IMG/VR virus record: IMGVR_UViG_3300027759_006101 | Span: 186,001 to 250,000 of that record | Length of the DNA: 64,000 bases | Strand: one strand, 5' to 3' | In this document: positions 1-59,100 of the stretch, one piece after another | Position numbering within the stretch: the first letter of the stretch is position 1 | How the letters are laid out: each line of letters opens with the position of its first letter | Notes under the pieces: model-generated | The model's input: the letters and a program-made list of their open reading frames with translations, nothing else | What the model was told of the DNA's origin: nothing | The model's database searches: none | Translations under genes and position numbers: made by a program

Positions 1-1
1 T

Positions 2-361
2 TGGTCTTACAGCATCCCACTTAACACCCCAATTATTAAGGTTCCAAGAATACCAGTCATGATAACCTGTTTCCTCGAACGCTTTGATGTTTTGAATAAT
101 CTCTTTAGCACGATGAACAACCCACTCATCATCACAAGTAGCAACTTCCTCTAATGTAAGAAAATTAGTATTCTTGTGCTTATTCACTTCATTGATATAA
201 TCACCTGGAGCAAGATGAGGAGATGATGTTCCCTTTAAAACTTCAGGCATAGGGATGAAGGAGTTGAACAATCCTTCAAGATTGACTTTCTCTTTAAAAA
301 CATTATACTCTTCCTGTGTTTGGAAAATACAGGTGAGTTCGTTCATTACCCAGTTAGGCAT
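2..361 (-). CDS. DUF1281/YubB-like protein, 3'-truncated by window edge (not in ORF track)
   Basis: Hand translation from ATG at 361: MPNWVMNELTC...FNSFIPMPEVL...DWYSWNLNNWGVKWDAVRP. The MPNW start and WY.WN..NWG.KWD motif are typical of this family. Confidence 0.75.
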   Translation of the reverse strand, partial: MPNWVMNELTCIFQTQEEYNVFKEKVNLEGLFNSFIPMPEVLKGTSSPHLAPGDYINEVNKHKNTNFLTLEEVATCDDEWVVHRAKEIIQNIKAFEETGYHDWYSWNLNNWGVKWDAVRP

Positions 362-588
362 CTTTTGGCTTCTTTCTCGTACATCATAAATGTACAGGAT
401 GTTATATCATCTACAACAGTGTATTGCCAGTAATTAAGGGATATATTTCTCTTGTAGAAATTATATCCCTTAAAGCTCTTATGATAGAAATTAAATGTTA
501 CTTGGTCCCACTCTAAGTATTTAATTTCTGCAGCAAGTTGTTTTGCTGCACTAGTCTTCAAAAAATTCTGCATCATCATAGCGCACAT
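346..588 (-). CDS. hypothetical protein
   Basis: ORF in a tightly overlapping - strand run. Confidence 0.5.
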   Translation of the reverse strand: MCAMMMQNFLKTSAAKQLAAEIKYLEWDQVTFNFYHKSFKGYNFYKRNISLNYWQYTVVDDITSCTFMMYEKEAKRCLTG

Positions 589-790
589 TAGTTATGCTAT
601 GATTTTCCATTTCCTCGAATTGATGAACAATATCATATCCACCAGCACCAGCTTCAGCAACAATACACATTTGCAGCATATACATTATGTCATTGAATTC
701 TAATGCATATAATTTACCAGCAACATCATAGTGCTTTATTACGTCATCAGGTATTTCCATTGTACCTGTAATTTTAAAATTGATTTTCAT
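551..790 (-). CDS. hypothetical protein
   Basis: Acidic 79-aa ORF, 4-nt overlap with the upstream ORF. Confidence 0.6.
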   Translation of the reverse strand: MKINFKITGTMEIPDDVIKHYDVAGKLYALEFNDIMYMLQMCIVAEAGAGGYDIVHQFEEMENHSITNVRYDDAEFFED

Positions 791-1041
791 TTGGCTTCCT
801 CAAAATCAATATACTCTACATTTGATTCCATACTAATATTTTTTATCTCGAATTCCTCAATGCTAGAAATATCATTAGGAAATCTTAATAAGTCTTCTGG
901 AAAGGATGGGTCAATTTCTATGCAATCAAAAGAAATTTCTGGATGAAAGAATACACCCTCTGCCTCGAAAACTGTATCGTGCAAAATAACACCATCAGGA
1001 ACAGTGAATTCTGCGACAACTGTAACACGCATCTTTTTCAT
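787..1041 (-). CDS. hypothetical protein
   Basis: 84-aa ORF with GA-rich RBS; N-terminus resembles 551..790 (alternating hydrophobic residues, then IPD/VPD). Confidence 0.6.
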   Translation of the reverse strand: MKKMRVTVVAEFTVPDGVILHDTVFEAEGVFFHPEISFDCIEIDPSFPEDLLRFPNDISSIEEFEIKNISMESNVEYIDFEEAK

Positions 1042-1182
1042 ATTGGCTCTCTCTAATGTAATATATCATAAGAGACATAATAACGCAAACAATAAAAGCT
1101 TCTTTATTGGGAGGGAGAACGACATTGTTCTCCCTCTAATCGCTACAGGACAAGAAGCCAAAATCATCCTGTAGCAATCTTT

Positions 1183-1857
1183 TTAAAAATCAAAGTGCAA
1201 TTGATTCTCTAAACAAGAAGACCAATACCTCGAATTTTTATAACCTTGTTTGACATCCCAATAAATACATCTGGCTATATAATTGGGTGCTTTCATTTTC
1301 TCTGCTCGATAATGCCATTTTCTTTCGCCTTGTTCATACTCGGCAACATCTTTAGAGTTATCTTTCTTATATCCCTGTTCATTCATTCCAAGTAAACGGA
1401 GCATATGAACATCAAGACATACCGCTTGACATTTTTCTGGATAACATAATTCAAGAGCAAAACTTGTTTTTGCTAATCCAATTCCCCACAATTCAAGAGA
1501 GAGACGATTGCGAAACTTAAACCAGTTCTCTCTATTAGTCTTTTTAAACTTTTCTGGATTCGCCCAAAACTTACTCGAAAAGTCCCAAATATACTTTGTG
1601 CGCTGATTATGACAACCTGCTCTACCTATATATAATAAATGAGCAAGTTGGTCTTTATCACTAATCCAAGACTCGAAATTCTTGATATGATTGTATGCAC
1701 GAACATTACTTTCCCACGTAGTATGAATTGATGTATATGCGAACAACCATCTTTGGAAAAATTCTCCATCTGTCTGTGGAGCAATGTTATTCCAATACTC
1801 TTTATATCCATTCACCTTATGGCTATCAACACTCTCTAAAACACTCTGGAAGGTCAT
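1183..1857 (-). CDS. HhH-GPD superfamily DNA glycosylase-like protein (Ogg-like)
   Basis: HhH motif LWGIGLAKTSFAL followed by VCLDVHMLRLLG (candidate catalytic Lys and Asp). Confidence 0.65.
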   Translation of the reverse strand: MTFQSVLESVDSHKVNGYKEYWNNIAPQTDGEFFQRWLFAYTSIHTTWESNVRAYNHIKNFESWISDKDQLAHLLYIGRAGCHNQRTKYIWDFSSKFWANPEKFKKTNRENWFKFRNRLSLELWGIGLAKTSFALELCYPEKCQAVCLDVHMLRLLGMNEQGYKKDNSKDVAEYEQGERKWHYRAEKMKAPNYIARCIYWDVKQGYKNSRYWSSCLENQLHFDF

Positions 1858-1912
1858 TTTGGCTTCGACCCTTTCGTTTGATGTCTTATAGTATCAGATG
1901 TTTAAGGGTGTG

Positions 1913-2215
1913 TCAAAAGATTTTTTTCTTAATCTCGAAATAATGGTCATGAATTTTATTATATAATCGTTTTGAGATTGTTCTTGCATCGATACAAGAT
2001 TTATCTTTTATATTATAATATGATATAATGCATGTAGGGCTATTAAAATGATTAGATATATGTATTTGGGTTTTCTTATCTTTTAAATATATTACTCGAA
2101 AGTTTGGTGCCTCTAATTTGCCGCAACGTTCATCAAGCTTATATAATTTAAAAAGATTGCTCGAAAAGGTGGCTTCATCATCTTCTTCTATTAGTTCTGG
2201 ATATAAGGTACTCAT
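1913..2215 (-). CDS. hypothetical protein
   Basis: 100-aa ORF in coupled operon. Confidence 0.55.
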   Translation of the reverse strand: MSTLYPELIEEDDEATFSSNLFKLYKLDERCGKLEAPNFRVIYLKDKKTQIHISNHFNSPTCIISYYNIKDKSCIDARTISKRLYNKIHDHYFEIKKKIF

Positions 2216-2433
2216 TTTAAAAGTCCTAGTAATCTTTCTATTACTCTTGCAGGCACGTTTTTTAAATCTAACTCAACGTTTACCATTAAAGACTGTTCTC
2301 CAATTAAATCTTTATTTTGATATTCTACTTTTTGATAATTAGCTGTCTCAAAACTCTTTAATAATAATTGAAATAATAACGCAGCTTCATCGTCATTAAG
2401 AATTTGCGCTAGCGCTTGAATCTTCTCTTTCAT
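2212..2433 (-). CDS. hypothetical protein
   Basis: 73-aa ORF, coupled overlap. Confidence 0.55.
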   Translation of the reverse strand: MKEKIQALAQILNDDEAALLFQLLLKSFETANYQKVEYQNKDLIGEQSLMVNVELDLKNVPARVIERLLGLLK

Positions 2434-2608
2434 CTGTAAATAAATTTAATACCTTATAAATAGTGCTGAGCTCAAAATCCTGAATTGAAGTGTGTAAATT
2501 GATCTTATCATCTTCCCAGGACTCAAGCAAATTTGTTAGCAGTGTGATAATATTATCTGATTCAATTTCATTTAAGGAATCAGACAGTTGTAAGAATTTC
2601 TCTTTCAT
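2396..2608 (-). CDS. hypothetical protein
   Basis: 70-aa ORF; begins MKEK like its neighbour. Confidence 0.5.
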   Translation of the reverse strand: MKEKFLQLSDSLNEIESDNIITLLTNLLESWEDDKINLHTSIQDFELSTIYKVLNLFTDEREDSSASANS

Positions 2609-3497
2609 TGTATCTCTTTAATATATCTAATATTGCGTAGTCTTTATTCTTTAATTCTACATCAAACAATACATCTTTATCATAATGTACTGGAAGATTC
2701 TCGGCCATATCACTGTGAGCTCTAGTTCCATTCTTGCCTTCAGAGTAATGGAATATAGGAGCACAATTCCAGGTAGAAAATGCATCGAAAAACGCATCCT
2801 TATGAGAAGTTCCGTGATTCAACATTTCGTGATGCAAATTATCAAATGTAACGGGAATTTCACACCTATTATAAAAATATTTTTTAAGATTAGATACAGT
2901 CCAAGTATTGCCAGTATCGTTGTTCTCTAATACTAGTCTACTCTTTACACTTTCAGATAAGCGCTCGAAATTTTTAATAAACGTTCCTGATAAATCTTCT
3001 GCATCTCCTTCTTTACGTATATGTATATTTAAAGGATTGTAATGGGACCTACTTAAATCTAATCTATCAAATATTTCCCCGTGCATTTCTAAATCAATTA
3101 AGGAATGTTTTATTTTAACGTCGTCATCAGAGGTAAGAGTTATATATTCACTAGGATGTGCGCTTACTCTAATACCTGTTTCTTTAATCGTATGGGATAA
3201 ATCTTCTATTGATTTATTAATAAGATTATAATTTGGCAGATCTTCCAGGGCCAACATTACTTCAGGATGTTTTATTACTGGAGTTAAATCGCTCGAAAGT
3301 CTATATCCCTGAATATTATTAGCAGCACAATGACGAACGATTTTCTCAGACACAGTAAAATTATTAATTATTATCTCTGACAGCTTCTCTAATGATTCGG
3401 ATCTTTCTTTACTCGAAAAAGATTTATAAGTCATTGTTCGAAATTTATGGCCCTGTTCTGCCAAAATGTTCGAAATGCAGCATAAGGAAAGATTCAT
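2580..3497 (-). CDS. uvsE: UV DNA damage endonuclease (UvsE/UvdE)
   Basis: YRLSSDL, SAHPSEY, LVLENND, PVTFDNLHH, HYSEG, AHSD and VELKNKD motifs. Confidence 0.92.
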   Translation of the reverse strand: MNLSLCCISNILAEQGHKFRTMTYKSFSSKERSESLEKLSEIIINNFTVSEKIVRHCAANNIQGYRLSSDLTPVIKHPEVMLALEDLPNYNLINKSIEDLSHTIKETGIRVSAHPSEYITLTSDDDVKIKHSLIDLEMHGEIFDRLDLSRSHYNPLNIHIRKEGDAEDLSGTFIKNFERLSESVKSRLVLENNDTGNTWTVSNLKKYFYNRCEIPVTFDNLHHEMLNHGTSHKDAFFDAFSTWNCAPIFHYSEGKNGTRAHSDMAENLPVHYDKDVLFDVELKNKDYAILDILKRYNEREILTTV

Positions 3498-3513
3498 ATA
3501 AAGATGATATCAT

Positions 3514-3927
3514 ATGCAGGAAGAAAACACTAATATTAAGAAGTTATTTCCTATGAACGAAGAGATTTTAAAGAAGCTCGGTTATAATAGTATTGCTCTC
3601 GAAATGCTTTTAAAAAGAGAAGCTCAAATTGATCCTAGAGATATTATAATGCCAGGAGAAGATAGATCTAGTATTCAACAAGATTATAGTAATGTTGAAA
3701 TTGTATTAGAAAATTTAAAATCTCAAATTATTCAAATTTTAAATACAGCTAAATCTCTACCTCAATTCTTAGAAGGTGAAGAAGGTCCTGATGATTCTGC
3801 ATTCTATGATTACAGAAGATCACTAGTAGATAGTTTAGAAGAAGCGGGAAATAAAATATCTACATTACTAATAGAAAATAATCAATCTAGTAGTGCTGAT
3901 GAATTAGATAACTTTTTACAGCAATAA
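3514..3927 (+). CDS. hypothetical acidic helical protein
   Basis: 137-aa ORF followed by a terminator. Confidence 0.6.
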   Translation: MQEENTNIKKLFPMNEEILKKLGYNSIALEMLLKREAQIDPRDIIMPGEDRSSIQQDYSNVEIVLENLKSQIIQILNTAKSLPQFLEGEEGPDDSAFYDYRRSLVDSLEEAGNKISTLLIENNQSSSADELDNFLQQ

Positions 3928-3928
3928 T

Positions 3929-3961
3929 AAAAAAGGATTCTTCTAGAAAGAATCCTTTTTT
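3929..3961. terminator. bidirectional intrinsic terminator
   Basis: AAAAAAGGATTCTT-CTAG(A)-AAGAATCCTTTTTT. Confidence 0.85.
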
Positions 3962-4068
3962 ATTTAATTCCACAATTAAAGTGTTTAGGGAAGAGTAGAT
4001 TCAGTACTTCATTGTCTTATTCGTCTCTTCAATTAGATCTTATCAACTCTATCCTGTATAATCCTTTT

Positions 4069-4683
4069 ATGCTAGACAATTATGAAAAAGATTCTAATGG
4101 TGTAATATTTCAAAAAGATAGAGAACCATTCTTATACGATTATTCTTACGCAGACAATTATAATACACTTCCTACAAATGATATTATGTCTCACTTGCGT
4201 TTAGGCTACATCATTGGTTCTTTGGGAAAAATGCCAGAATCAATTTTAGATGTTGGATATGGTAATGGTGCTTTTTTAAATTTAGCAAAAAATTACTCGA
4301 AATGTTATGGACACGATATTTCTCATTATCCAATTCCAGAAGGTGTTGAATTTGTAAAAGATATATCTGAAAAACATTTTGATGTAATAACTTTTTTTGA
4401 TGTATTAGAACATTTTCCCAATCCATACTTCCTCGAAAATTTAAATTGTAATTATATTGTTTGCTCTCTACCACATTGCTATAATTTTTCTGATGAATGG
4501 TTTGAGAATTGGAAACATCGAAAACCAAATGAACATCTTTGGCATTTTAATCAAGAATCTTTAATTAGGTTCTTTGATGCACAAGGATACTCAGAAGTCA
4601 ACACCTCTAATTTTGAAGATGTAGTGAGAAAGAGTAAAGAAGAATACTCTAACATTCTTTCTGGAGTGTTTAAGAAAAGATAA
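4069..4683 (+). CDS. class I SAM-dependent methyltransferase
   Basis: ILDVGYGNGAFL and FDVITFFDVLEH motifs; start moved to ATG 4069, 6 nt after TATAAT. Confidence 0.8.
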   Translation: MLDNYEKDSNGVIFQKDREPFLYDYSYADNYNTLPTNDIMSHLRLGYIIGSLGKMPESILDVGYGNGAFLNLAKNYSKCYGHDISHYPIPEGVEFVKDISEKHFDVITFFDVLEHFPNPYFLENLNCNYIVCSLPHCYNFSDEWFENWKHRKPNEHLWHFNQESLIRFFDAQGYSEVNTSNFEDVVRKSKEEYSNILSGVFKKR

Positions 4684-4709
4684 AAAAGAGGAGCAAAGCT
4701 CCTCTTTTT
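4683..4709. terminator. bidirectional intrinsic terminator
   Basis: AAAAAGAGGAGC-AAA-GCTCCTCTTTTT between convergent genes. Confidence 0.9.
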
Positions 4710-4711
4710 CT

Positions 4712-4939
4712 TTACGCTGCTAGTAAATCTAAACTGAATTGTATTTGTCTCATTACAGGGATAAAATCATTAACATCGATTTTCTCATCTTGTAATACCT
4801 CGAAAATCTTTAGCGCATTATATTTAGCACTATCTGGCATATCTGAGCAATTGTAAAAATAAGAAACATAGTCTATCAAAGCATCATATAACATTTTATT
4901 TTTCTTTGTCATCTCCCACACCTCAAGATATATTTTCAT
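4712..4939 (-). CDS. hypothetical protein
   Basis: 75-aa ORF ending at a terminator. Confidence 0.55.
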   Translation of the reverse strand: MKIYLEVWEMTKKNKMLYDALIDYVSYFYNCSDMPDSAKYNALKIFEVLQDEKIDVNDFIPVMRQIQFSLDLLAA

Positions 4940-4983
4940 TAATATCTTTTACTCGAAATCCTATCCTAATAACTCTTTTATTC

Positions 4984-5559
4984 TTATTTCAAAATTACAC
5001 CTAAATCTTTTAAAACTTTCCTCGAAATGTTAGGAAAACCAGTCATAACTATTTTATCACTCTCTAAAGAAAGTTCTATCTCTTGATCGAAAAATAACTC
5101 TTCCTTGGAAATCTTATTAGAGAAGAAATAAAACTCTTGATTAAGGCTACCTCTAAGAGAATCTTCTGTCTTATACTCTTCCTCATACCGTCCATCAATT
5201 AAAACATCTATATACTCTAAACATTTTTCTCTAAGAGGATTTTCTCGGATTTCATTACGAGAAAATCCAGTAAACAATATAATTCCTTTAGGGAGTTTTA
5301 TTTCTTTTAAGAGAAATAAAAGCTCTAACAATTCTCTCTCTTGCTCTAAAGGATCTCCGCCAGATATTGTTATTCCATCTACCTCGAAATTTTTTATTAG
5401 CTCGAAAATTTGTCTAGGAGAAAGTTCTTTATAAACTTCATAGCTCCAAGTCTCAGGATTAAAACAATTCTTACATCCTTTAGAACAACCTTGAGTCCAT
5501 AATACAAATCTTAATCCTGGGCCATTTACTTTACTTAAACAATAACCTCGAATATTCAT
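4984..5559 (-). CDS. radical SAM 4Fe-4S protein, NrdG-like (anaerobic RNR activase family)
   Basis: NGPGLRFVLWTQGCSKGCKNCFN (CxxxCxxC), ISGGDPLEQ, IDGRY and LRGSLNQ motifs. Confidence 0.8.
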   Translation of the reverse strand: MNIRGYCLSKVNGPGLRFVLWTQGCSKGCKNCFNPETWSYEVYKELSPRQIFELIKNFEVDGITISGGDPLEQERELLELLFLLKEIKLPKGIILFTGFSRNEIRENPLREKCLEYIDVLIDGRYEEEYKTEDSLRGSLNQEFYFFSNKISKEELFFDQEIELSLESDKIVMTGFPNISRKVLKDLGVILK

Positions 5560-6767
5560 AGGCTCGAAATCTGTCTCCCCTCTAATGATAAAATGTTGAA
5601 GCTAAATAAGAAAGATATTCTTATGCACTAACATAAGAATATTCTAAAAGAAATAGGCTCGAAAATTTGGCCTCTCTAATTGTTTGGGAGATGAAGGTAA
5701 AGATTTATCTTACATAGAATAATACTTATTACGTCCCAAAATTTATAGTTCAATTTAGATTGTTCTCGCTTTTTCTTAAGAGCCCCGATAACTGAGACCA
5801 ATCTTTCTTCTAGTGTGAACAATCTTTATCTATATTAGACCATTCTTTAATCTAATATTTCTTTTTTTTCTCTATGGTAATAATTATTTTTCTCCCTTAT
5901 TAAAAAGCTCGAAATATATTTTCTTTCTTATATAACAAAAAATAGATCCCTCGAATTTGAAGGATCTATTTCTTTTTTAATAATGGTGTTTTAGGATATG
6001 TATTGTTCTATAATGTGTTAATATATTCCTTCTCTAATAATGTAATAAAAATATTATTCTCCATATAGTCTCCACCCTGTCTCCACTCAACCTCCACTAG
6101 TATTATAATTTTGTAATTATAATATGTGAATAATGTTATAAGGTCTCCACTGTTTTTATATTTTCTTTTTTCTGTAAATTTTTATGCTCAAAAGGTATCA
6201 AAAACTTATATTTGAGGATAAGTCTGTATTAATGCAAGGTAGCTGATTCATTAAAGGAATATGTTTCTTATATGTAGAAGAGACAAAGTCTTTATATAAT
6301 TTTAATAGTGTTTGATATGCTCGAAAATTGTTTTACTCTAATGGTGTTTATAAAAGCTCGAAATATATTGTTGTTTAGTGGTGTATTGTTTTAGTTTGTA
6401 ATATTTCATCTTGGTATAGTAGATTATTAATTATTTTGATTGTTGTTTGTTTTTCTTTAATGGCGAAAAATAATATAATGATGAGAAAGATTAATGTTAT
6501 GTATGGTTTTATGTTTTTCATTATTTGCTCGAAAATGTTTGTTTCTCTAATAGTGTTTTTGAAATTTATATTGTTCATCTATATTGTCTATGATAAATCT
6601 TTCTATATGGAATTTTAAAGATGTTTGTTCTATGTAGTCTAACATTTCTTTTGTTCTCTCTAATGGGTTTTTTAAATTGCTCAGAATATTATATAAGCTT
6701 TTCTACTAATGGGCAAAAAAGAAATGCTCGAAAAGTAGATGGATAATTTAAGTAGAATATATATTGT
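5560..6767. other. ~1.2-kb AT-rich, essentially non-coding region with iterated motifs (candidate origin or packaging control region)
   Basis: Longest gene-poor stretch in the window. Contains 9 CTCGAA and 6 CTCTAA, an 18-bp direct repeat AAAAGCTCGAAATATATT (5903 and 6352), clustered CTCCAC repeats (~6070-6150) and a hairpin AATAGATCC/GGATCTATT (~5941-5970). Confidence 0.55.
6733..6759 (+). promoter_or_regulatory. putative phage late promoter AAG(G/T)-N16/17-TAGAATA
   Basis: AAGT-N16-TAGAATA here and at 46202 (+); AAGG-N17-TAGAATA at 23011-22984 (-); AAGG-N16-TAGAATA at 50390-50364 (-). Confidence 0.5.
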
Positions 6768-7352
6768 ATGGATAAATTATTAAAGGTTGCAAGTTTATTA
6801 GATAATCTTGGTAGTTATGTTTTATCTGATAAGTTATATAAGATTGCTGAATTGTATATTCCTCCTGTTGAATTTTATGAGGGTGTTGACAAGAGGCATT
6901 ATAATGATTACAGGGCTCCGGGAAGTAAATCTTATGATGAGATGATGATTTCTCGAATGAAGAATATGCCTAAGAATTTATCAGGTACAGCCGTTATGGA
7001 TGGCAGTATGTATCGTGACAATCCATATACTCCGAAAGAAATATTAGATATTAGAAAAAAATTAATCCCTACTAATTTCAGGAATGAGATTAGTCGTTAT
7101 GAGAGTGGGGATAGTGTAAGTAACAGTAGTAATCCGAGAAGTTTTGTTACTAGTTTATTTGAGTTTGGTAGAAAGAATGGGATGAATAATTTGACAGCTG
7201 CTTTTGATGCTTATGCTGATAGTGGTGCAACATATAATAATCAGAGTATAAAGAATATCCCTCAATTAAAGAAATTATATATGCAGATAAAATCTAATCC
7301 TCGAATGTTTAGTGAGACAGAAATTGGAGATATGTTGGAAGTTTTGTTTTAA
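6768..7352 (+). CDS. hypothetical putative virion-internal protein with shared helical leader
   Basis: N-terminus MDKLLKVASLLDNLGSYVLSDKLYKIAE. Confidence 0.7.
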   Translation: MDKLLKVASLLDNLGSYVLSDKLYKIAELYIPPVEFYEGVDKRHYNDYRAPGSKSYDEMMISRMKNMPKNLSGTAVMDGSMYRDNPYTPKEILDIRKKLIPTNFRNEISRYESGDSVSNSSNPRSFVTSLFEFGRKNGMNNLTAAFDAYADSGATYNNQSIKNIPQLKKLYMQIKSNPRMFSETEIGDMLEVLF

Positions 7353-7354
7353 AG

Positions 7355-7391
7355 AAAAAAATCCCTCGAATCTTTAATCGGGGGATTTTTT
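7355..7391. terminator. bidirectional terminator with CTCGAA in the stem/loop
   Basis: AAAAAAATCCC...GGGATTTTTT between convergent genes. Confidence 0.75.
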
Positions 7392-9150
7392 ATTTAATTA
7401 TTTGTTTTATTTTATATGCTGCTTTTGTATATATGCCTGGGTTTACAGTTTCAGGAGTGGATGTGTAATTTGGCACGTATTGTTCTGAGAGTAATCTTAA
7501 AACAAAATCCTGAAATTGTTCTTCAAAATCAGCTGCCTTACGTCTTGCAAAAAAGGGAATTCTTTTAATTGGTATTGAGAAATAATTTGCAAAGTTGTTT
7601 TTAATTTGATCAGAAACAATTTTATTTGTAATATCCATCTCTGTGTTTGGTCTTGCGTAATAATGATCACTTCCATCAAATTCTAAAATATATTGAATTC
7701 TTTTACTACTGTCTAAAACAACAGCATCAAAAGAATATGATAGTGGATCAAAATTATTATTATTCAAAAAGATAGAATAAGAATCTGCAAAACCATCTTT
7801 ATTAGGTGTGTAAGTTGTACATTTCCATTTAGTGCAGGATCTCATTTCATCATTTGCAGTTTCTGCACACTCTAGCTCAAACTCATATAATTTTTTATCT
7901 TCGAAATCTGGATCTTCAGGTGTAAGATTTTTTCTATACGACCAGCCATCTTTTACTTCTGGGATTTTTTCAAATTCAGTGTTAGATAAATTGAAGCAAT
8001 GGATAGTTTTTCCATTTCTTTCGATTACTGTTTTATGTGATTTTATGCTACTAAAGAGATAAGTAAAAATGTCTTTGTTTCTATCTTTTTTGATTTGTGT
8101 TTCAACAAACTCTTCGAATCTGGGATCGAGTTTACATAGAAATCCTTGCTTAAAAAATAAATTTTGTGGAAGTATATTTTGAGTAAGATTGGTTTGTTGA
8201 ATGTTAAAAAAAACTTTATCACCAAGACTTGATGTTGGCTCTCTTTTATCAATGATCAATTCTTCGTAAACAGTTTTTAAATCACTATTAAATGGATCTC
8301 TTAATTGTCTGAGTGATAATATATGATAATTTTCATTGTTGAAATTATATATTGATATTTCTTTATTATTGATATCTATAATTTTATCATATTTTTGTTC
8401 TACAGATATTTTATATGTTCTTTCAGTAATGTCTTTTGGTAGTGTTCTTAGGAAACTTTCCCAAGCAATAGGATTTTCTCTGAATGATAAAACTTTTGGA
8501 TTCATTTCATTCCTAAAGATATTTAATTGTTGTTTGTCTAGAGCATTAAGATTGCTTTTAGATTTTAATTGATACCACACATCATTAAAATAATATTGTT
8601 TTGGCAAACCTTCATATACTGTTTCAGAAAATCTATTTGATATTATATTTTTATTTTTCATATCTCTTAAAATATTTAAGAATGTTTGAGCATCAGGAGT
8701 TATAAAGTCAATTCTGTATTTATTATTTATTTCATAATCAGGATAACGTATATTTTTATTGTTTTTTCTAATAAAAGGTATAGGTTGCACTCCGAGTTGT
8801 GCATATGCATTTTGTATTATATCTAAATTTGGAAGATCTTTTAATAAGGGTTTTCCAATTCTTAGTATTAAAGTATTATTTTGTCCAGGTTCTGTGTTTA
8901 TATCAGCAAAATAATGTGGTGAAGAAGAATAAAATTGTGTAAGTTGAGTTGCTTTTTCTTGAGATAATCTTTCAATAAAAATTTGTTTACTTGCAAATTT
9001 AGTTTTTGATAGTAAAGTTATGTGATCTTTTGTATCTTTTAATAAATTGTTAAATTCTTCTGGGGATAGATCATTGACTGAAATAGGAGCTGGCATATCG
9101 TATTGAACGATTTTGCTTTTTGGCATTCTTATCTTGATTCTATAATACAT
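7390..9150 (-). CDS. large hypothetical protein with C-terminal Vsr/DUF559-like PD-(D/E)XK nuclease domain
   Basis: C-terminal SFDAVVLD...ILEFDGSDHY...DQIKNNFA...IPIKRIPF pattern. Confidence 0.6.
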   Translation of the reverse strand: MYYRIKIRMPKSKIVQYDMPAPISVNDLSPEEFNNLLKDTKDHITLLSKTKFASKQIFIERLSQEKATQLTQFYSSSPHYFADINTEPGQNNTLILRIGKPLLKDLPNLDIIQNAYAQLGVQPIPFIRKNNKNIRYPDYEINNKYRIDFITPDAQTFLNILRDMKNKNIISNRFSETVYEGLPKQYYFNDVWYQLKSKSNLNALDKQQLNIFRNEMNPKVLSFRENPIAWESFLRTLPKDITERTYKISVEQKYDKIIDINNKEISIYNFNNENYHILSLRQLRDPFNSDLKTVYEELIIDKREPTSSLGDKVFFNIQQTNLTQNILPQNLFFKQGFLCKLDPRFEEFVETQIKKDRNKDIFTYLFSSIKSHKTVIERNGKTIHCFNLSNTEFEKIPEVKDGWSYRKNLTPEDPDFEDKKLYEFELECAETANDEMRSCTKWKCTTYTPNKDGFADSYSIFLNNNNFDPLSYSFDAVVLDSSKRIQYILEFDGSDHYYARPNTEMDITNKIVSDQIKNNFANYFSIPIKRIPFFARRKAADFEEQFQDFVLRLLSEQYVPNYTSTPETVNPGIYTKAAYKIKQIIK

Positions 9151-9232
9151 TTCATAAGTTTTATACGTTATGATGTACTGCTATCCCTCGAAAAAGTGGG
9201 AGATTTTTCTTTTTAAGTAGAATAAATATAGT

Positions 9233-10294
9233 ATGGAAAACTTTATTTATTTAGCTGAACATTTTGACAATTGTGGTGATTACGAGCTTTCAGACAAACT
9301 ATTTAAAATAGCGCAATTAAGTACAGTCCTTCCAAATAATTCCAAAGGAATTCCAAAATATTTAAAAGCCTTAAATCCTATGATGGGAATAGCTTTATCT
9401 CCCGAAGGTTTAGCTATTGAAAAAAAAGTTATAGATGAAGCTCAAGCTAATCCAGTTTATCAGGGAGCTAGTAAAGTTCAAGAATTATCAGAACAAGTTA
9501 AATCTCCTGTAAGTAATGCAAAAACAATTGCTTCAATTGGAAACTTAACAGGTTGGTTTACTAAAAATATTCCCTCAATGATAAAAACATTAGATGCTGC
9601 TGAACAAAAGCTTGATGTGTTTAGTAAGTATCCACTTGCACAAAAAGTTTTTCAAACTTTAGACATTGTAAATCTTATCAAAGATTCAGTTGAATTTTTA
9701 ACAAATATTTATAAGTCGGGATTTAATGCAATGTATAAAAATGACCCAGGCGGAGTAACAAAATATTTAGCTAGGATCGTTAGTACTTTTACAAATCCAA
9801 ACTTGACAAAATATTTTCCTCCTATATTGCCATTACAACCACAATTGATGGCTTTAAATACATTAAGTTCGGGAATGGGTTTAATGGTTAGTGGAGCAGA
9901 ATCCCTTGGAACATTTTATGGAAATATGGAAAATAAAGGTAGTAATAGAATAGAACAAATTCCACAAGCACAAGCATATACTAGCCAAGGAATGAAAGCT
10001 AAAGGTGCCACGATGCCATTAGATGAATTAGCGCTAAAGTATGGTGAAGTTTATAATGTTTTGTTAGATTATGTAAATAAAAAAGCCACAGTTCCAGAAA
10101 TGATTACAAAACTTGGCAATGAGCCTGGAAGAATGGCTTTGATGAGTGCTCACATTGCTCAAGGTATTCTTCCGCCAGCAAATGGACAGTATCAAATTTC
10201 CAGCTACAAGAGAGCCCGTGATCAAGCTCAAAAACAAAATCAAAAGAATTATGTTTACAGTCCTGGATCTGGAGGAATGGGATATTCAAGATAA
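9233..10294 (+). CDS. hypothetical putative virion-internal protein with shared helical leader
   Basis: N-terminus MENFIYLAEHFDNCGDYELSDKLFKIAQ; GTAGAATA upstream. Confidence 0.7.
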   Translation: MENFIYLAEHFDNCGDYELSDKLFKIAQLSTVLPNNSKGIPKYLKALNPMMGIALSPEGLAIEKKVIDEAQANPVYQGASKVQELSEQVKSPVSNAKTIASIGNLTGWFTKNIPSMIKTLDAAEQKLDVFSKYPLAQKVFQTLDIVNLIKDSVEFLTNIYKSGFNAMYKNDPGGVTKYLARIVSTFTNPNLTKYFPPILPLQPQLMALNTLSSGMGLMVSGAESLGTFYGNMENKGSNRIEQIPQAQAYTSQGMKAKGATMPLDELALKYGEVYNVLLDYVNKKATVPEMITKLGNEPGRMALMSAHIAQGILPPANGQYQISSYKRARDQAQKQNQKNYVYSPGSGGMGYSR

Positions 10295-10912
10295 TTAGTT
10301 GTCTTGTAGTCTTTTTCTTCGATTAGTCAGTGTCTCATCTTCATAGCACCAGTATTTAGGGCCTTGAATTTCTTTTTGAGAAATAAGTCCTGTTTTTCTT
10401 GCAGCTTCTGTTAGGGTAAGTACTTGAGAATTAAATAAAACTGTATTTTCTGAAAATACAGTGCAAGTAATTTCTTCATTTTTACAAAAGTAAAGTACAG
10501 AGCCTAGTGGGATATAAGCTTTCGAAAAAGTAAAATTAGCTTCTCTTTTCCTTGCAACTTTTTCTATTTCTTTAAGTTCATCTGGTTCAATGTATGTATT
10601 TTCTTCTGGAGTAACATCTACAGGATTTGCCAAAGAAAGTGCTGTTTTAACTTGTTCTGGATCCACGTTAAAAAATTCACGTCTAGGATTGACTCTACTC
10701 GAATTAAATAATTTGTGAATAGTATCTTCAACTTTTTGTGCATTTTGGACTTTGCAAGCGTAATAAATTCCAAATGGATATGGAACTGATGTTGATGAGG
10801 ATAGTTCTTTGACTCTTTCCTTAACATCATTCTTTTCAGTAAATCCAATCTTATAAATATCTGGCATACCAATATTGCTTAAAATATAAACTATTCCTAA
10901 ATTTTCATTCAT
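10295..10912 (-). CDS. T5orf172/MUG113 (GIY-YIG) domain protein
   Basis: GIVYILSN.GMPDIYKIGFT...ERVKELSSSTSVPYPF...REFF. Confidence 0.85.
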   Translation of the reverse strand: MNENLGIVYILSNIGMPDIYKIGFTEKNDVKERVKELSSSTSVPYPFGIYYACKVQNAQKVEDTIHKLFNSSRVNPRREFFNVDPEQVKTALSLANPVDVTPEENTYIEPDELKEIEKVARKREANFTFSKAYIPLGSVLYFCKNEEITCTVFSENTVLFNSQVLTLTEAARKTGLISQKEIQGPKYWCYEDETLTNRRKRLQDN

Positions 10913-10947
10913 AAAAAGATTATACGTTTAGGTAATAATATTTGAAT

Positions 10948-11424
10948 TTACATTTCAGATAAATGTTTCATTCCGTATCCCACCCAGTTTACAAAGTCTT
11001 CAATAGTAAATACTTTGATAATCTTTTTGCTATTGGGGTCAAGATACTTTTTATTATTTGCAGCTGTCCTAATCCACTCGAAAGCTTTAGGTTTATATCC
11101 TCCGCCATCTAGTATGATTATGATTTCGTCTTCTGCCCATACTTCTGCAGCATTTTGTAGTAAGTATGGGAATTTTTCATCTACACTTCCAGATACACTT
11201 TGCCATTTACATTCAATTCTTATTTTTCTGTCATCAAAGCAGATTAAAAATTCTGTACGGCATTTGCTTCCATAGATTGAGATGTATGGAATGTGTTTAA
11301 TGATAGTGCGTTCTGTATCATTGTTTTTGATATAATCTGCGTAAGAAATTTCTCGAAACTTGTTGCTGATAAAGAAATCATAAACAAATCTTTCTAATTG
11401 TTTTCCGCTTTTTGTATCTGGCAT
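10948..11424 (-). CDS. PD-(D/E)XK restriction-endonuclease-like protein
   Basis: TEF...RIECKWQSVSGSVDEKFPYLL...IIILDGGGY motif; start moved to ATG 11424 (AAGG RBS, just after the dam stop). Confidence 0.7.
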   Translation of the reverse strand: MPDTKSGKQLERFVYDFFISNKFREISYADYIKNNDTERTIIKHIPYISIYGSKCRTEFLICFDDRKIRIECKWQSVSGSVDEKFPYLLQNAAEVWAEDEIIIILDGGGYKPKAFEWIRTAANNKKYLDPNSKKIIKVFTIEDFVNWVGYGMKHLSEM

Positions 11425-11425
11425 A

Positions 11426-12235
11426 TTATTTACCTTTATATATTGCAAGCAATTCAGGAGCGTTCTTCCTATTTTCTGCTTTACTTGCTATAGTTCTCTT
11501 AACGTCAAAAGAAATTATATCATCTGCGTCTTTATATATATCTCGAATATCTTTTGTATCGTGATTTGATATTACAACAGTGCAAGAACGTTCTTTAGAA
11601 TATTGTATTGCTAAATCTCTTAATTGCAAGTGTTCTTTGATAGAAAAATCGTTTGTAGAGTATTTACTAAAATCAGCAGTATCAGTAAGTGGTAAGTATG
11701 GTGGGTCGCAATAAATTACTGTATTTTCATCTGCTTGTTTGAAAAGTTCAGAAAAATCTTCATTAAGGAATACAAAATTATTTTTAGTATAATCATGGAA
11801 TTCAATAATTTCTTTCTCTGGAAAATAAGGTGCTTTAAATTTGCCAAAAGGCACGTTAAACTTACCTTTACTATTGTATCTACATAATCCATTGAAGCAG
11901 TGTCTATTTAGATATAAAAACAGTGCAGATTTGAGATTTTTATCAGGGGTGTTATTATATAGTTCACGTAATTCATAAAATCTTGTTTCTTCATTACCAT
12001 TTAGGAAAAAGTCTTGCGCTAATTTTATAAACTCTGTGGGATTTTTTTGAATTAGCTGATACATATTAATCATATCAGCATTAATGTCATTACAAATATA
12101 TTTTTTAAAATTTGTATTTAGTGAAACAGCGCAACTTCCAGCAAAAGGTTCAATTAATGTTTCGCCAACAAGGCAAGGAGCAATTTTCTCAATGATGGAA
12201 GATTTATTTCCAGCCCATTTCATAAACGTTTTCAT
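11426..12235 (-). CDS. dam: DNA adenine methyltransferase (Dam, D12 class)
   Basis: FMKWAGNK, IEPFAGS, CNDIN, LYLNRHCFNGLCRYN...FNVPFG and YCDPPY motifs. Confidence 0.93.
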   Translation of the reverse strand: MKTFMKWAGNKSSIIEKIAPCLVGETLIEPFAGSCAVSLNTNFKKYICNDINADMINMYQLIQKNPTEFIKLAQDFFLNGNEETRFYELRELYNNTPDKNLKSALFLYLNRHCFNGLCRYNSKGKFNVPFGKFKAPYFPEKEIIEFHDYTKNNFVFLNEDFSELFKQADENTVIYCDPPYLPLTDTADFSKYSTNDFSIKEHLQLRDLAIQYSKERSCTVVISNHDTKDIRDIYKDADDIISFDVKRTIASKAENRKNAPELLAIYKGK

Positions 12236-13596: not shown

Positions 13597-13625
13597 AAAA
13601 AAGGTCTCTTTCGAGACCTTTTTTT
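13597..13625. terminator. bidirectional terminator
   Basis: AAAAAAGGTCTC-TTTC-GAGACCTTTTTTT. Confidence 0.9.
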
Positions 13626-56132: not shown

Positions 56133-59100
56133 TTAAACTTCGTTTAATGTAAATGACACTGAGAAGTTGGCGTGAGTAGCATTCAATAAATTAAAGTTCA
56201 ATCTCAAAAGATTTCCTGAAGTTACAAAAGTGCCTGCTACAAATGTGTTAGTTGTAGTCACATAAATGCCTGCACCAGAAAGGGTCAAACCTGAACCTCC
56301 AATTAAACTTGACCCTGTAGCAGCAAGAGTAAATGCTCCAGTGTCGGTCGAAGATCTTTCAAGTTGAATTCTTGAAGAGCCAGCAGATGGTGTTTCTACC
56401 CTTACATTAAATTCAGTAAGTATGAAAGTTTGCTTCGTAGCACCATCTTCAGAAGAGTCAGGTATTAGGTAAATTATGTTATCTGGACCGGCTGCCAAAG
56501 GTGTATATCCTGCTGCCATCCAAACATGGTGCTCCATTTTATTTCTTAGAACAACACGATTGCCTGTAACAGATGTAGTTGCTAATCCACCCTCCAGAGG
56601 GGCAAAGAACATATTTCCAGATGTATCAACTAATATTGTTGAATATCCATTACCGACAGGAGCTGTAGGTAAAGATAATGTATAGTTTGTAGCAACATTC
56701 GAAGCTTGAATAGCAGCGTATCGTGAGTTGTCAGCATTAAAAAATCTTACATCATTCTGCGCTCTCAAATCAAAGTTTGTAAATACAGAAATTGCAGTGC
56801 CAGCTTCGTGAATGTATATAGTGTCTGTAGCACCATTATTGACGGCAAATCTTATTGGGTGAGATGTTGTAGTACCCAAAACTAATGGCCCACTTGTAGC
56901 AGCCAAATAAGTTGCATTTGGCGCAAATAAGGCTCCTGAACCAGTAAAGGTACTAGAGTTCATACCAATTTCACCATAATTTGCAGCGTCTGTGCTTATA
57001 TCATTATTGACAACTAAATTGGCTGATGCACTAGTACCATTAGATTTATTTTGAATGACAAGTTGATTATATGAGTTGACAGTAGAAACAAATGAAGCTA
57101 GATTATTAGGAATGTTATAGCTTGGGGTTGTTCCTACAGATAAAGTAGTACCAACAAATAAACTCTTTGCAATTCCAGCCCCACCGTCAACTTGAAATGC
57201 GCCTGTTGTTGTAGATGTAGACTCTGTAGTATGAGTAATTTCTACTACTCCAGTTGAAGTATTGTTTGTAAATGTATTAGAACCAGAAACTGAAGCACCA
57301 GTTCCTGCATAATATGCTACTGAATATTGAGCATTAGGAATTGCTACTGTTCCTGAACCTGCTCCAGAAGAGCCACCTGATGGTGCAGCCACCCAAGCCA
57401 TAACTCCAGTGGTACTTGCAGACAAAAAGGATGTTCCAGTTCCAGAAGGGTAAGCAAGCGGAAGAGTATACGTCAAATTGGCTGCTTGTGAAGCGCTTGT
57501 TGTCAGTGTGTTGTTATTTGTTCGTGTTGCATATGAAGAGCTAGTAATGGTAAGGTCTGCAACTGTGGTTTTGCCAACATAATCCACTTTGAAAACTGAA
57601 AGATTAGATGGAGGTGAACCATTATCAAATTTTGCATCAATAAAGTTATATTGAGCTCCATTCAATGATGTATTACTCAGGGCTAAAAGTGTTCCAGTTG
57701 CAGAACCTGTAAAGTTTACAGAGTTATTTTCTCCTATCAATAATGCAAAATTTGTTGAACTGCCAGTGTTATAATTTATGGTTTTCAACATTCCAGTAGC
57801 GTTTGCATAATTGAAAGTCGATGACGCAGCAAAATTTCCAGTGCCAGAATTATATTGAACATCGCCAACAGACCCTGAAGGGGATCCACCACCACCACCA
57901 GCAGGAGCAGCCACCCAAGCCATAACACCAGCTTGTGTAGATGTCAAGAATGAAGCTCCAGCACTAGAAGGGGATGTTGGTGGAAGTATATATGTAGTGT
58001 TAACTCCAGACTGAGCGCTTGCAAATGCAGTATATAAACTACCGTTGAACATTTGTAATCTGCCACCAATGCTGACAGACAATCCAATTCCAACTCCACC
58101 TGTCGCTATTAAACCACCTACTCCAGGAGTTGTGGAATTGATATTTGACTCAAAGCGAGAAGCATCACCAACGTAAAGACTTCCACCAATCCCAGCTCCT
58201 CCTGTGACAGTTAAAGCCCCAGTTCCATTTGATATTGCTGCAATTGAAGAAGAAAATCTTGAAGCACCCGCAACATACAAACTCCCACCTATGCCAACTC
58301 CACCAATTGCTTGCAGAGCTCCAGTAGTAGTATTAATTGCTGCTGCCGTTCCAACTACTGTTATTGCTGTCCCTGCAGAAATTCCTACTGCAGCAAATGT
58401 TCCTCTTGCTGGATTTATTTGGATGGTATTTACAGTTGATAATCCTAAGCCTGTACCTGATGCTGCAGATATTACTGTTGGATAAAAGACTGCATCAACA
58501 ACGGTACTGCTAACTGCTACTGAGGATGCTGCTGAAGGAGGGACTGCAGCCCATATAGGTGCTGTACCCGGACCTTGGGCAGTCAGAACTTGATTTGTTG
58601 AACCAGAGGGAAGTTTACCTAATGATGTCGCAGTTGCAGCATATAATATATCCCCAACTGCATATGTATTAAATCCAGTACCACCGTAGAATGATGTGAT
58701 AGTGGAACCAGACCAAGTTCCTACAGTTACTAATCCATTATTTAGAACTACACCTGAAATGCTTGATGGAACTGATGTGCTAGTAAATACTGAACCACCA
58801 ATACCAACACCACCAGTTACTGTCAATGCTCCAGTTCCTGAACTTATGGATGAAGCGCTAGAGGTAAATCTTGAAGCTCCTCCAGCAAATACGGACCCAC
58901 CAATGCCTACTCCCCCAGTTACAACTAGAGCTCCACTGCCCACATCTATGGCAGCTGTAGTGGCTTCAAACTCGGATGGTAATGCTACATTTAAACTTCC
59001 GCCGATTCCAACGCCACCAGTGACTGTTAGTGCCCCGGTGCCTGAATTTAAAGATGCAATACTAGAAGTAAATCTAGAGGCTTCGCCTACATATAATGAA

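Follow-up and report, generated by a model that had tools for sequence, protein, structure and literature searches.

A strand-polar array of the word TTCGAG in an uncultivated freshwater jumbo phage

A stretch of DNA from an uncultivated 358-kb freshwater jumbo phage carries a six-base word that is repeated many times on one strand only, within genes as well as between them. The question raised by this locus is whether such an array is kept by selection and, if so, what kind of signal it might be. In the current analysis we have examined the window, a 64,000-nucleotide stretch corresponding to positions 186,001 to 250,000 of the IMG/VR record IMGVR_UViG_3300027759_006101, together with adjoining sequence and related contigs.

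Occurrence, polarity and selection of the word

The word CTCGAA occurs 38 times on the + strand within 74-11547, 30 of these before 6733, and no TTCGAG is found on + until 13446, exactly as the original prediction had stated. The only other + strand CTCGAA is at 59380, which had been given as 59389. CTCTAA occurs 24 times on + within 149-6663, and not 22 times as had been counted, with 2 further copies on the - strand. The in-frame examples cited earlier, at 5383, 5401 and 3598, are correct. The observation is real, and it is stronger than was first described.

For the 8.4 kb from window -1000 to 7400, with expectations taken from the remaining 65 kb of sequence, CTCGAA is observed 41 times against 0.97 expected (Poisson P 3e-51) with 0 on the other strand, CTCTAA 25 times against 1.74 (P 1e-20) with 2 on the other strand, and CTCGAAA 29 times against 0.58. 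An unbiased scan of all 6-mers in sliding 6-kb windows ranks CTCGAA, TCGAAA and CTCTAA first, the only other local enrichment being in a repetitive 1803-aa ORF. Read on the strand of most of the genes, the word is W-TTCGAG-S with TTAGAG as a second form. In 613 unique contexts the base preceding TTCGAG is T in 70%, A in 28%, C in 0% and G in 2%, and the base following it is C or G in 63%. All other one-mismatch variants are near background.

The word lies in all reading frames, in non-coding DNA and in genes of both directions, and is not a protein repeat or an RNA structure. The original prediction had named three outcomes that would count against it, and none of these was obtained. The enrichment survives within-gene synonymous-codon shuffling, with 44 observed against 12.7 ± 2.8 and a maximum of 21 in 1000 shuffles. 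The word is neither equally frequent across the genome nor on both strands, and the array is conserved in relatives. The selection has also reshaped codon pairs against codon preference, as Phe-Glu is encoded by TTCGAG in 11 of 16 cases inside the domain and in 1 of 69 outside. The same polar array is present in 24 of 25 related freshwater contigs with enough flanking sequence (marker protein 68-100% identical). The density of sites is conserved among these while individual sites turn over. Sites are conserved above background, at 61% vs 39.5% and 39% vs 12%, while total numbers are kept.

Organisation of the array-bearing region

Sequence obtained beyond the window start (identical over 10,790 bases) reveals that the array ends abruptly 949 bases to the left of position 1, and its densest part is at window 5.0-6.7 kb. 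The array, of about 65 copies in about 8 kb, is associated with the following features.

1-7370, - strand: dense polar array, TTCGAG or TTAGAG on - (CTCGAA or CTCTAA on +), about one site per 125 bp, continuing to 949 bases left of window position 1.
9187-11547, - strand: sparse tail of five TTCGAG in the same orientation, about 0.3 being expected by chance. One is in a hairpin loop 36 nt upstream of the 586-aa gene and four are in the sense strand of three accessory genes (T5orf172, PD-(D/E)XK nuclease and D12 adenine methyltransferase).
5560-6767, - strand: 1.2-kb mostly non-coding head region with 12 sites per kb and four composite units, TTAGAG-N10/11-TTCGAGC, at 5563-5585, 5658-5679, 6320-6341 and 6528-6550.
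6068-6150, - strand: cluster of GTGGAGAC-type repeats, three exact copies plus degenerate ones, found nowhere else in the window.
4984-5559, - strand: NrdG-like radical-SAM activase gene, the first gene of the block and the richest in sites, with 10 in 576 bp or 17 per kb.
3514-4683, + strand: cassette of two genes in the reverse direction, a 137-aa gene (3514-3927) and a SAM methyltransferase (4069-4683), one side being closed by a bidirectional terminator at 4682-4710.
1183-3497, - strand: repair genes inside the array with 6.5-7.4 sites per kb, UvdE (2580-3497) and an Ogg-like glycosylase (1183-1857). Small ORFs of unknown function fill the rest of the domain.
6751-7352, + strand: 194-aa gene preceded by AGTAGAATATATAT-N3-ATG, with 2 array sites antisense to itself.
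7356-7391, strand not assigned: bidirectional terminator hairpin with TTCGAG in its loop. A second such hairpin lies at 5928-5983.

The first of the composite units ends 3 nt before the NrdG start codon and is the site best conserved across lineages. In the whole 358-kb genome the composite occurs only in this region, and among IMG/VR contigs only in this clade. The GTGGAGAC-type repeats are conserved in five lineages and flank a sigma-70-like promoter (TTCACA-17-TATAAT, window 6102-6130). They could serve as operators, as an origin or terminase site, or as the GGA-rich 5' end of a short RNA.

The reverse-oriented cassette carries 5 sites in the domain orientation, antisense to its own mRNA, and none in its own sense. 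Across the clade, 12 families of reverse-oriented genes carry 21.8 sites in domain orientation and 4.5 reversed in 5 kb. The motif preceding the 194-aa gene also stands before its paralog at 9216-10294. This is a late-promoter-like element, so that the + strand genes here are probably late genes.

A possible polar roadblock to early transcription

The interpretation offered in the original prediction, a polar cis-signal domain, is partly supported. A strand-polar signal under selection at the nucleotide level, independent of gene direction and reading frame, is present. The Chi-like, first-entering-end and protein-coating readings proposed for it all remain possible, the last of these resembling the model preferred here. 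A KOPS-like reading is not supported, as the array is limited to one domain and shows no orientation switch. A centromere or pac array is not supported either, as those are compact clusters of up to about 0.5 kb of longer repeats. The suggestion that the centre lies at or left of the window start is likewise not supported, in view of the abrupt left end and the position of the peak.

We tentatively suggest that the array is a distributed, one-directional DNA tag on a hyperplastic block of accessory early genes, running from the repeat-bearing non-coding region at 5.6-6.8 kb through NrdG, UvdE, Ogg and about 15 small ORFs. In this view a phage-encoded protein would bind W-TTCGAG-S / TTAGAG sites, in duplexes such as TTTCGAGC, as an asymmetric monomer and would stop RNA polymerase moving in the early direction, leftward in the window. 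Composite sites between the promoter and the NrdG start would act as the operator, and two to three sites per small gene would act as roadblocks. Every cassette in this fast-changing region, each with its own promoter, would therefore be shut off together after the early phase, and late genes on the other strand would be spared from antisense transcription. What the data establish is the polarity, the sequence specificity and the selection at the nucleotide level, the independence from reading frame, gene direction and gene starts, the limits of the domain, the conservation of density with turnover of sites, and the absence from neighbouring core genes. That the reader is a DNA-binding protein, that its effect is a block to elongation and that the block is immediate-early are inferences, the temporal class resting on gene order and promoter-like motifs only.

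This model draws on the co-orientation of the copies with nearly all genes of the block. The precedent is the stoperators of cluster A mycobacteriophages (L5 gp71-type repressor sites), more than 20 asymmetric sites whose orientation follows transcription and which fail when reversed, with one copy at the early promoter and the others inside transcription units (PMC9283540). Sites are also found at operator-like places, namely a composite between a conserved -10-like element and the NrdG ATG in all seven lineages, two copies 12 and 34 nt before rIIB, and TTAGAG abutting a TGATATAAT element. The density follows position or transcription unit and not gene family. An rIIA-like paralog inserted in the block has TTCGAG 7 plus TTAGAG 3 = 10 sites, while the rIIA gene outside the block in the same lineage has no TTCGAG, and the core genes rIIA, rIIB, DUF932 and the 586-aa gene have none. 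A polar roadblock against early-direction transcription would be placed exactly as the sites are in the reverse-oriented, probably late, genes. Neither single strand shows selection for accessibility of the word, which fits recognition of duplex DNA. In the reference lineage close pairs at 14-26 bp are in excess (14 vs 5.6, P 0.0004) and no spacing is below 14 bp, although the excess is not significant in four more distant lineages.

Other observations weigh against the model. Pfam and PHROG scans of about 50 neighbouring proteins gave no HTH or RHH hit, a model of a conserved 103-aa neighbour matched nothing, and no candidate binding protein was found. A word carrying about 12 bits of information is short for a specific repressor, and sites continue at high density for about 700 bp upstream of the strong promoter. 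Stoperators are 13-mers, number about 25-30 per 50-kb genome, lie mostly in short intergenic spaces and serve lysogenic immunity, whereas here a word of 6-7 bp is confined to one block of a presumably lytic jumbo phage, with about 80% of copies inside genes, and in reverse-oriented genes the copies follow the block and not the gene. A purely positional DNA signal, such as a Chi-like one, explains the indifference to gene direction at least as simply.

Alternative readings and related systems

Such a Chi-like array at a genome end is possible though doubtful. The word, read as 5'-CTCGAAW-3' / CTCTAA on the window + strand, would be recognised as single-stranded DNA by a RecBCD/AddAB-type helicase-nuclease of the phage or of its host, the latter not being identified here. 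The enzyme would enter at a DNA end in the non-coding region and move leftward, each copy switching it from degradation to RecA loading, so that the leading end of a slowly entering, terminally redundant genome would erode by only about 125 bp per attack and be channelled into recombination between terminal repeats. Chi sites are likewise short, asymmetric words, typically of 6-7 nt with one tolerated variant, active in one orientation only, scattered without regard to genes and kept in density while sites turn over. The polarity regardless of gene direction, reading frame or coding status, the near-random scatter without helical phasing, the lack of need for strand accessibility and the highest density next to the non-coding region are in agreement with this. 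The geometry also fits, since the word lies on the strand that would end 3' at a right-hand end and would be met from its 3' side. In Xanthomonas phage XacN1 (rIIB about 40% identical) the inner boundary of the 65,875-bp direct terminal repeat (PMC5852040) falls inside the divergent gap at 65,391-66,126, which heads the equivalent block of small ORFs, rIIA, rIIB and tRNAs, and a cluster of short repeats lies just inside that boundary. However, XacN1 and Xoo-sp13 have no comparable array, and no evidence of a physical end was found here, as the three ~358-kb contigs look like rotations of one circle and contig breaks in the region do not share one position. Eight copies lie beyond the proposed end on the other side of the non-coding region, and the array ends abruptly 5.7-11.2 kb inward depending on lineage. 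Chi is moreover G-rich, set by the host, spread genome-wide at about one per 0.4-5 kb and switched in strand with replication direction, whereas the present word is confined to 8-12 kb and is not enriched elsewhere in the phage. The same XacN1 synteny could suggest a loading strip for a directional DNA motor or a first-step-transfer signal, in which the first 6-11 kb to enter the cell would carry oriented sites that load a translocase or polymerase pointing at the DNA still in the capsid, which would then pull in the rest of the genome, or in which the sites would define where entry pauses. The polarity points from the head region inward, in the direction of early transcription, the inner boundary is abrupt and conserved in synteny, and T7, T5 and SPO1 place their earliest genes at an entering end or in terminal repeats (SPO1 is mentioned in PMC5852040). 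This reading is unlikely, as no terminus and no motor candidate was found, the domain length varies two-fold between lineages, the sites are scattered rather than concentrated at the end, and no system is known to use such sites.

Tags at the level of RNA are about as possible, and as doubtful, as the Chi-like reading. UUCGAG / UUAGAG in early transcripts would be cleaved or bound by a sequence-specific endoribonuclease or RNA-binding protein, comparable to T4 RegB (GGAG) or MazF-type enzymes, clearing immediate-early mRNAs and antisense read-through RNA over late genes at the early-to-middle switch. Endoribonucleases specific for 5-7 nt, with target words over-represented in particular mRNAs, are known, and RegB and MazF-type cleavage also involves a short word in the sense strand of early mRNAs and a role in temporal shut-off. 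The presence of the word in the mRNA sense of nearly all genes of the block in any reading frame, its scarcity or absence in the sense strand of the reverse-oriented genes, and the several intergenic copies in hairpin loops agree with this. RegB targets, however, lie mainly in Shine-Dalgarno regions, while the present word is not more exposed than with shuffled flanks (mean ranks 0.42-0.50), is less unpaired in the sense RNA than composition-matched words, and also lies antisense to reverse-oriented genes. The five copies in the reverse-oriented cassette are behind a strong bidirectional terminator and would require read-through, the word is not avoided in the sense strand of other genes (4 observed against 5.8 expected), and no nuclease candidate was found. 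A defence-related word is very unlikely. TTMGAG has the form of a Type III, Type ISP or BREX recognition site (asymmetric, 6 bp, A at position 5), whose co-orientation would avoid cleavage and whose dense cluster would act as a decoy or sink. T7 carries 36 EcoP15I (CAGCAG) sites, all in one orientation, and escapes restriction (PMC3874151), and the present phage clearly responds to restriction words, CATG being 12-fold depleted. Yet the T7 sites occur genome-wide at roughly chance frequency, strand bias explains tolerance of sites and not a 40-fold local enrichment maintained by selection, oppositely oriented copies exist elsewhere in the genome, and no decoy of this kind is known. An array of minimal promoters or translation signals for early genes is largely refuted. 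Some copies lie 1-40 nt before start codons, and in one lineage there is an excess within 20 nt of starts (7 observed against 1.6 expected), but in the other two lineages tested there is no enrichment near starts. Only about one site in five to six lies within 60 nt upstream of a forward-gene start, the distances to start codons are not fixed, and the genes have their own sigma-70-like and SD-like signals.

The finding is novel, and the block itself resembles the PeSL cassettes of hyperplastic regions in T4-type phages. In both, small, fast-changing early genes are each flanked by a stem-loop and an early promoter, and assemblies break there. PeSLs are 50-70-bp intergenic repeats that mediate shuffling and do not include a hexamer written through coding DNA.

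Sequence setting and anatomy of the array

The window is positions 186,001-250,000 of the IMG/VR contig UViG_3300027759_006101 of 358,269 bp, and near-identical contigs of 358,344 bp occur in two other lake metagenomes. The gene content marks a jumbo phage. GroEL, a RuvB-like ATPase, a Y-family polymerase, ThyX, NrdG, UvdE, a Dam-like methylase and an ORF of 1803 residues are encoded inside the window, while rIIA/rIIB and tRNAs are situated just left of it. No isolated phage is close at the DNA level, and the best matches of rIIB, with about 40% identity, are from the Xanthomonas jumbo phages Xoo-sp13 and XacN1.

The strand-polarised array of CTCGAA and CTCTAA described in the original prediction has been confirmed. 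CTCGAA occurs 38 times on the + strand in 74-11547 and never on the other strand there, and CTCTAA occurs 24 times on the + strand in 149-6663. Sequence to the left of the window, obtained from an identical contig, shows eight more copies down to position -949, followed by an abrupt stop. For the region -1000 to 7400, CTCGAA is observed 41 times against 0.97 expected (P 3e-51), CTCTAA 25 times against 1.74 and CTCGAAA 29 times against 0.58. A blind scan of every 6-mer in sliding windows also places these words first, and an origin by chance or base composition is therefore rejected.

Most of the genes of the region are on the - strand, where the word reads TTCGAG or TTAGAG. Of all the one-mismatch variants only TTAGAG is clearly enriched, ATCGAG and TTTGAG being marginal. 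In 613 unique contexts from the clade the base before TTCGAG is T (70%) or A (28%) and almost never C or G, and the base after it is C or G in 63%, giving W-TTCGAG-S. The flanks of TTAGAG are weaker and different. The sites lie in coding DNA in all three reading frames, in non-coding DNA and in the loops of several terminator hairpins. Spacing is close to exponential at one site per 124-183 bp, with no helical period and no fixed repeat unit, and an excess of close pairs appears only in the reference and one close lineage. The density of sites in the individual genes and regions is as follows.

Density of array sites (sites per kb) in the genes and regions of the domain and its neighbourhood
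NrdG: 17
815-bp intergenic stretch of the head region: 12
Most genes of the block (two ORFs of 73 residues have none): 2-16
Core genes rIIA, rIIB, DUF932, and the genes of 586 and 353 residues: 0

The mostly non-coding head region holds four composites of the form TTAGAG-N10/11-TTCGAGC, which are unique in the 358-kb genome and, among IMG/VR contigs, unique to this clade. Features of this region and of its surroundings that bear on the interpretation are the following.

6068-6150 and 5928-5983, - strand: a strong sigma-70-like promoter flanked by a cluster of GTGGAGAC repeats (five GGA/GGAG in about 50 nt), followed about 110 nt later by a terminator hairpin. This is a candidate small RNA of ~165 nt with GGA repeats, or the repeats could be operator, origin or terminase repeats. 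They are conserved in five lineages.
6751-6764 and 9216-9229, + strand: AGTAGAATAWATAT, 3 nt before the ATG of two paralogous proteins (194 and 353 residues) that share an N-terminus of ~30 residues. This looks like a late promoter giving near-leaderless mRNAs, and the shared N-terminus could be a targeting signal.
7390-9150, - strand: the gene of the 586-residue protein, which has no family hit and lies in the sparse zone of the array. On reading of the sequence alone its C-terminus has a Vsr/DUF559-like endonuclease signature.
About -10.0 to -13.8 kb (16041-19581 of L085, a sequence that extends left of the window): four tRNA genes, Leu-taa, Lys-ttt, Met-cat and Ser-tga.

Selection on the nucleotides and conservation in relatives

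Shuffling of synonymous codons within each of 15 genes of the domain gives 12.7 ± 2.8 sites (maximum 21 in 1000 shuffles) against 44 observed, whereas the opposite orientation is at its shuffled level, with 2 observed against 3.0. Phe-Glu is written TTCGAG in 11 of 16 cases inside the domain and in 1 of 69 outside, and Leu-Glu is written TTAGAG in 11 of 18 against 6 of 110. Both the dipeptides are themselves about twice as frequent inside. The use of all three frames, the outcome of the shuffling and the distortion of these codon pairs only inside the domain rule out codon usage or a protein repeat. Reverse-oriented genes inside the domain carry the word in the orientation of the domain, at 21.8 sites against 4.5 reversed over 12 gene families and 5 kb, and one such cassette lies behind a strong bidirectional terminator.

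A contig whose NrdG is 63% identical has 31 TTCGAG forward and none reversed, and a lineage whose Ogg protein is 57% identical has 43 and none. A metagenome scan with the neighbouring DUF932 protein returned 80 freshwater loci at 68-100% identity. Of the 25 loci with at least 3.4 kb upstream, 24 carry the array, and in 18 of them TTCGAG is among the three most strand-asymmetric 6-mers. The exception has different synteny. The inner boundary is conserved in synteny, about 2.8 kb before DUF932 and about 0.6 kb in some lineages. Individual sites are conserved above background (61% vs 39.5%, P 0.003; and 39% vs 12%, P 2e-6), although more than half differ in position while the totals stay similar (63/51 and 56/63).

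An rIIA-like paralog inserted in the block in one lineage has 7 TTCGAG and 3 TTAGAG, a total of 10 sites, while the rIIA gene outside the block in that lineage has no TTCGAG. Gene content differs between the lineages and assemblies tend to break at the edges of the domain, and this is therefore a hyperplastic, strain-variable block. The contig ends pile up at these edges but at different positions, which fits strain variability better than a terminus. More distant phages show no comparable array, as seen for a 211-kb phage contig with a related glycosylase and for XacN1 and Xoo-sp13. GGAGTTC in XacN1 is at chance.

Comparison with known polar signals and possible mechanisms

The interpretation of the array in the original prediction as a polar cis-signal is partly supported, and only some of the kinds of signal it had suggested remain possible. 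The array resembles Chi sites in being a short asymmetric word with all copies co-oriented (41/0, 31/0 and 43/0 in domain orientation and reversed in three lineages), placed without relation to genes, reading frames or gene direction. It is however domain-limited and ultra-dense and has no known cognate enzyme, unlike Chi, and it is not enriched in the rest of the phage. Chi sites are oriented towards a DNA end or break from which the nuclease enters, and are recognised by the host RecBCD/AddAB and over-represented and skewed in the host genome; for an end near the array there is only a synteny lead, to the terminal-repeat boundary of XacN1. The genome-wide skew with a strand switch at the terminus that characterises KOPS / SRS translocase-orienting words is not observed, as enrichment is confined to about 8-12 kb and the rest of the window is at or below chance. 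Iteron arrays of pac, centromere or origin type are compact clusters (up to about 0.5 kb) of longer repeats in non-coding DNA, whereas the hexamer array spans 8 kb that is mostly coding. Only the separate GTGGAGAC cluster at 6068-6150 has this form. With stoperators the array shares polarity and multiplicity. Its sites are co-oriented with nearly all genes of the block but keep the orientation of the block in reverse-oriented genes, and a composite lies between a -10-like element, recognised from sequence only, and the NrdG ATG in seven lineages. Unlike stoperators, which are located in promoters and short intergenic spaces, about 80% of the copies lie inside coding sequence and the word is of 6-7 bp. 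In the stoperator system a copy overlapping the early promoter acts as operator, and the sites are bound by a phage-encoded monomeric repressor. The strand bias of Type III / ISP / BREX recognition sites likewise involves an asymmetric 5-7-bp word with all copies in one orientation, but such sites are at or below chance frequency, being tolerated or avoided and not accumulated, in contrast to the 40-fold local enrichment seen here, which survives codon shuffling. The array has hence not been assigned to any of these families of polar oligomer signals. Full-text literature searches for the word or for a comparable array found nothing relevant.

A general role as promoters or ribosome-binding sites is rejected. 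Within 60 nt upstream of a forward-gene start TTCGAG is found 7 times vs 4.5 expected and 6 vs 4.0 in two lineages, which show no excess near starts, and 9 vs 4.9 in a third. Only about one site in five to six lies in this interval and the distances to the ATG vary. A structured RNA, a known RNA family and tRNA are also rejected. No Rfam hit reached its threshold, there are no tRNAs in the window, and the word is not selected for single-strand exposure on either strand. Avoidance of the word elsewhere is not seen beyond a general depletion of TCGA/CpG-containing hexamers. Family scans of about 50 neighbouring proteins, carried out in search of a protein that reads the word, gave only enzymes and no DNA-binding domain. 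An AlphaFold model of a conserved neighbour of 103 residues (pLDDT 80) matched no solved fold, and the conserved reverse-oriented family of 137 residues has an acidic tail and no recognisable DNA-binding motif.

Two families of explanation remain, one linked to transcription and the other to position. The block looks like an early region, with small ORFs that have their own sigma-70-like, partly leaderless-type promoters and stem-loops, while the + strand genes in and beside it carry a shared late-promoter-like element. The word points in the early direction, sits at operator-like places and is missing from neighbouring core genes, and in reverse-oriented genes it lies where it would stop early-direction polymerase but not late transcription. 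The closest precedent is the stoperator system, whose asymmetric sites work in one orientation only (PMC9283540). We take such a block to transcription as the best single mechanism, though only tentatively. A sister hypothesis, in which the word marks sites of sequence-specific mRNA cleavage of the RegB / MazF type, is considered less likely. The word is in the mRNA sense, but this version is weakened by the terminator-enclosed cassette and the lack of exposure bias.

In the positional view the word would be read by a machine moving along DNA, and the indifference to gene direction, the scatter and the turnover of sites are all Chi-like. In XacN1 the inner end of the 65,875-bp terminal repeat (PMC5852040) lies inside the divergent gap that heads the syntenic block, and the order of the block, namely tRNAs, rIIB, rIIA, small ORFs and divergent gap, is the same. 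If the present phage is built the same way, the array abuts a physical genome end, with early transcription pointing inward. A Chi-like guard, which is about as doubtful as RNA cleavage, or a motor-loading or first-step-transfer strip, which is unlikely, would then be natural, although this end is inferred from synteny alone and eight copies lie beyond it. A restriction or BREX decoy is very unlikely, as it explains the polarity, as for EcoP15I sites in T7 (PMC3874151), but not the enrichment. A further possibility, also tentative, is that the array is a strand barcode on the leading end of a terminally redundant jumbo-phage genome. It would either disarm a host helicase-nuclease and turn it into a recombinase loader, as a phage-borne Chi landing strip, or load a motor that imports the remaining 350 kb. 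Either would be the first natural case of a phage writing a dense polar translocase signal through its own genes.

The array itself is thus a real, highly significant and evolutionarily maintained feature, while its recognition by a protein or a moving machine, its effect on transcription, the temporal class of the genes and the nearby genome end are inferred. A six-base word has been written about 65 times into one strand of 8 kb, against codon preference and even at the cost of amino-acid changes, and is kept across a whole clade of abundant freshwater jumbo phages. Some directional process therefore reads that DNA (or its RNA) with a strength of selection normally seen only for Chi, KOPS or operator systems. 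As a silencing tag, it would show how a phage can regulate a constantly reshuffled set of accessory genes with a signal that survives any insertion or deletion. As an end-protection or import signal, it would reveal a new way for giant genomes to survive slow entry. In every case the word is a simple, testable handle, amenable to pull-down with TTTCGAGC-bearing duplex, to reporter assays in both orientations and to read-end mapping, in a group of phages that has no cultured member.

Other features of the genome

The phage encodes an N6/N4 DNA methylase next to an IceA/NlaIII-family endonuclease (17100-18387 of L085, about -10.9 to -12.1 kb, left of the window). Over window 1-64000 CATG is avoided about 12-fold, with 16 observed vs 192 expected outside the array and 4 vs 26 inside. 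This looks like a phage-borne CATG restriction-modification pair combined with self-avoidance of the site. A PD-(D/E)XK nuclease (PDDEXK_11) overlaps a D12-class adenine methyltransferase at 10948-12235 on the - strand, and GATC is about two-fold depleted, which may indicate a second restriction-modification-like pair.

The ORF of 1803 residues (56133-61544, - strand) has no Pfam or PHROG hit and has GC-rich repetitive words (CCACCA, CTCCAG). It is probably a repetitive structural or fibre protein.

Extended -10 elements (TGATATAAT) sit 6-7 nt before start codons in the sequences L003 (11330-11348 and 12810-12831) and L014 (9120-9139 and 10470-10492), which suggests leaderless mRNAs, and many other genes have GGAAGCCAA just before the ATG. 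Intrinsic terminators across the genome use a stem-TTTCGA-stem loop of the UUCG type (window 13598-13620; 18222-18250 of L003; 13565-13600 of the sequence L138). These loops, and in a few cases tRNA T-loops, account for a few isolated copies of TTCGAG outside the domain that are unrelated to the array and should not be counted among its members.
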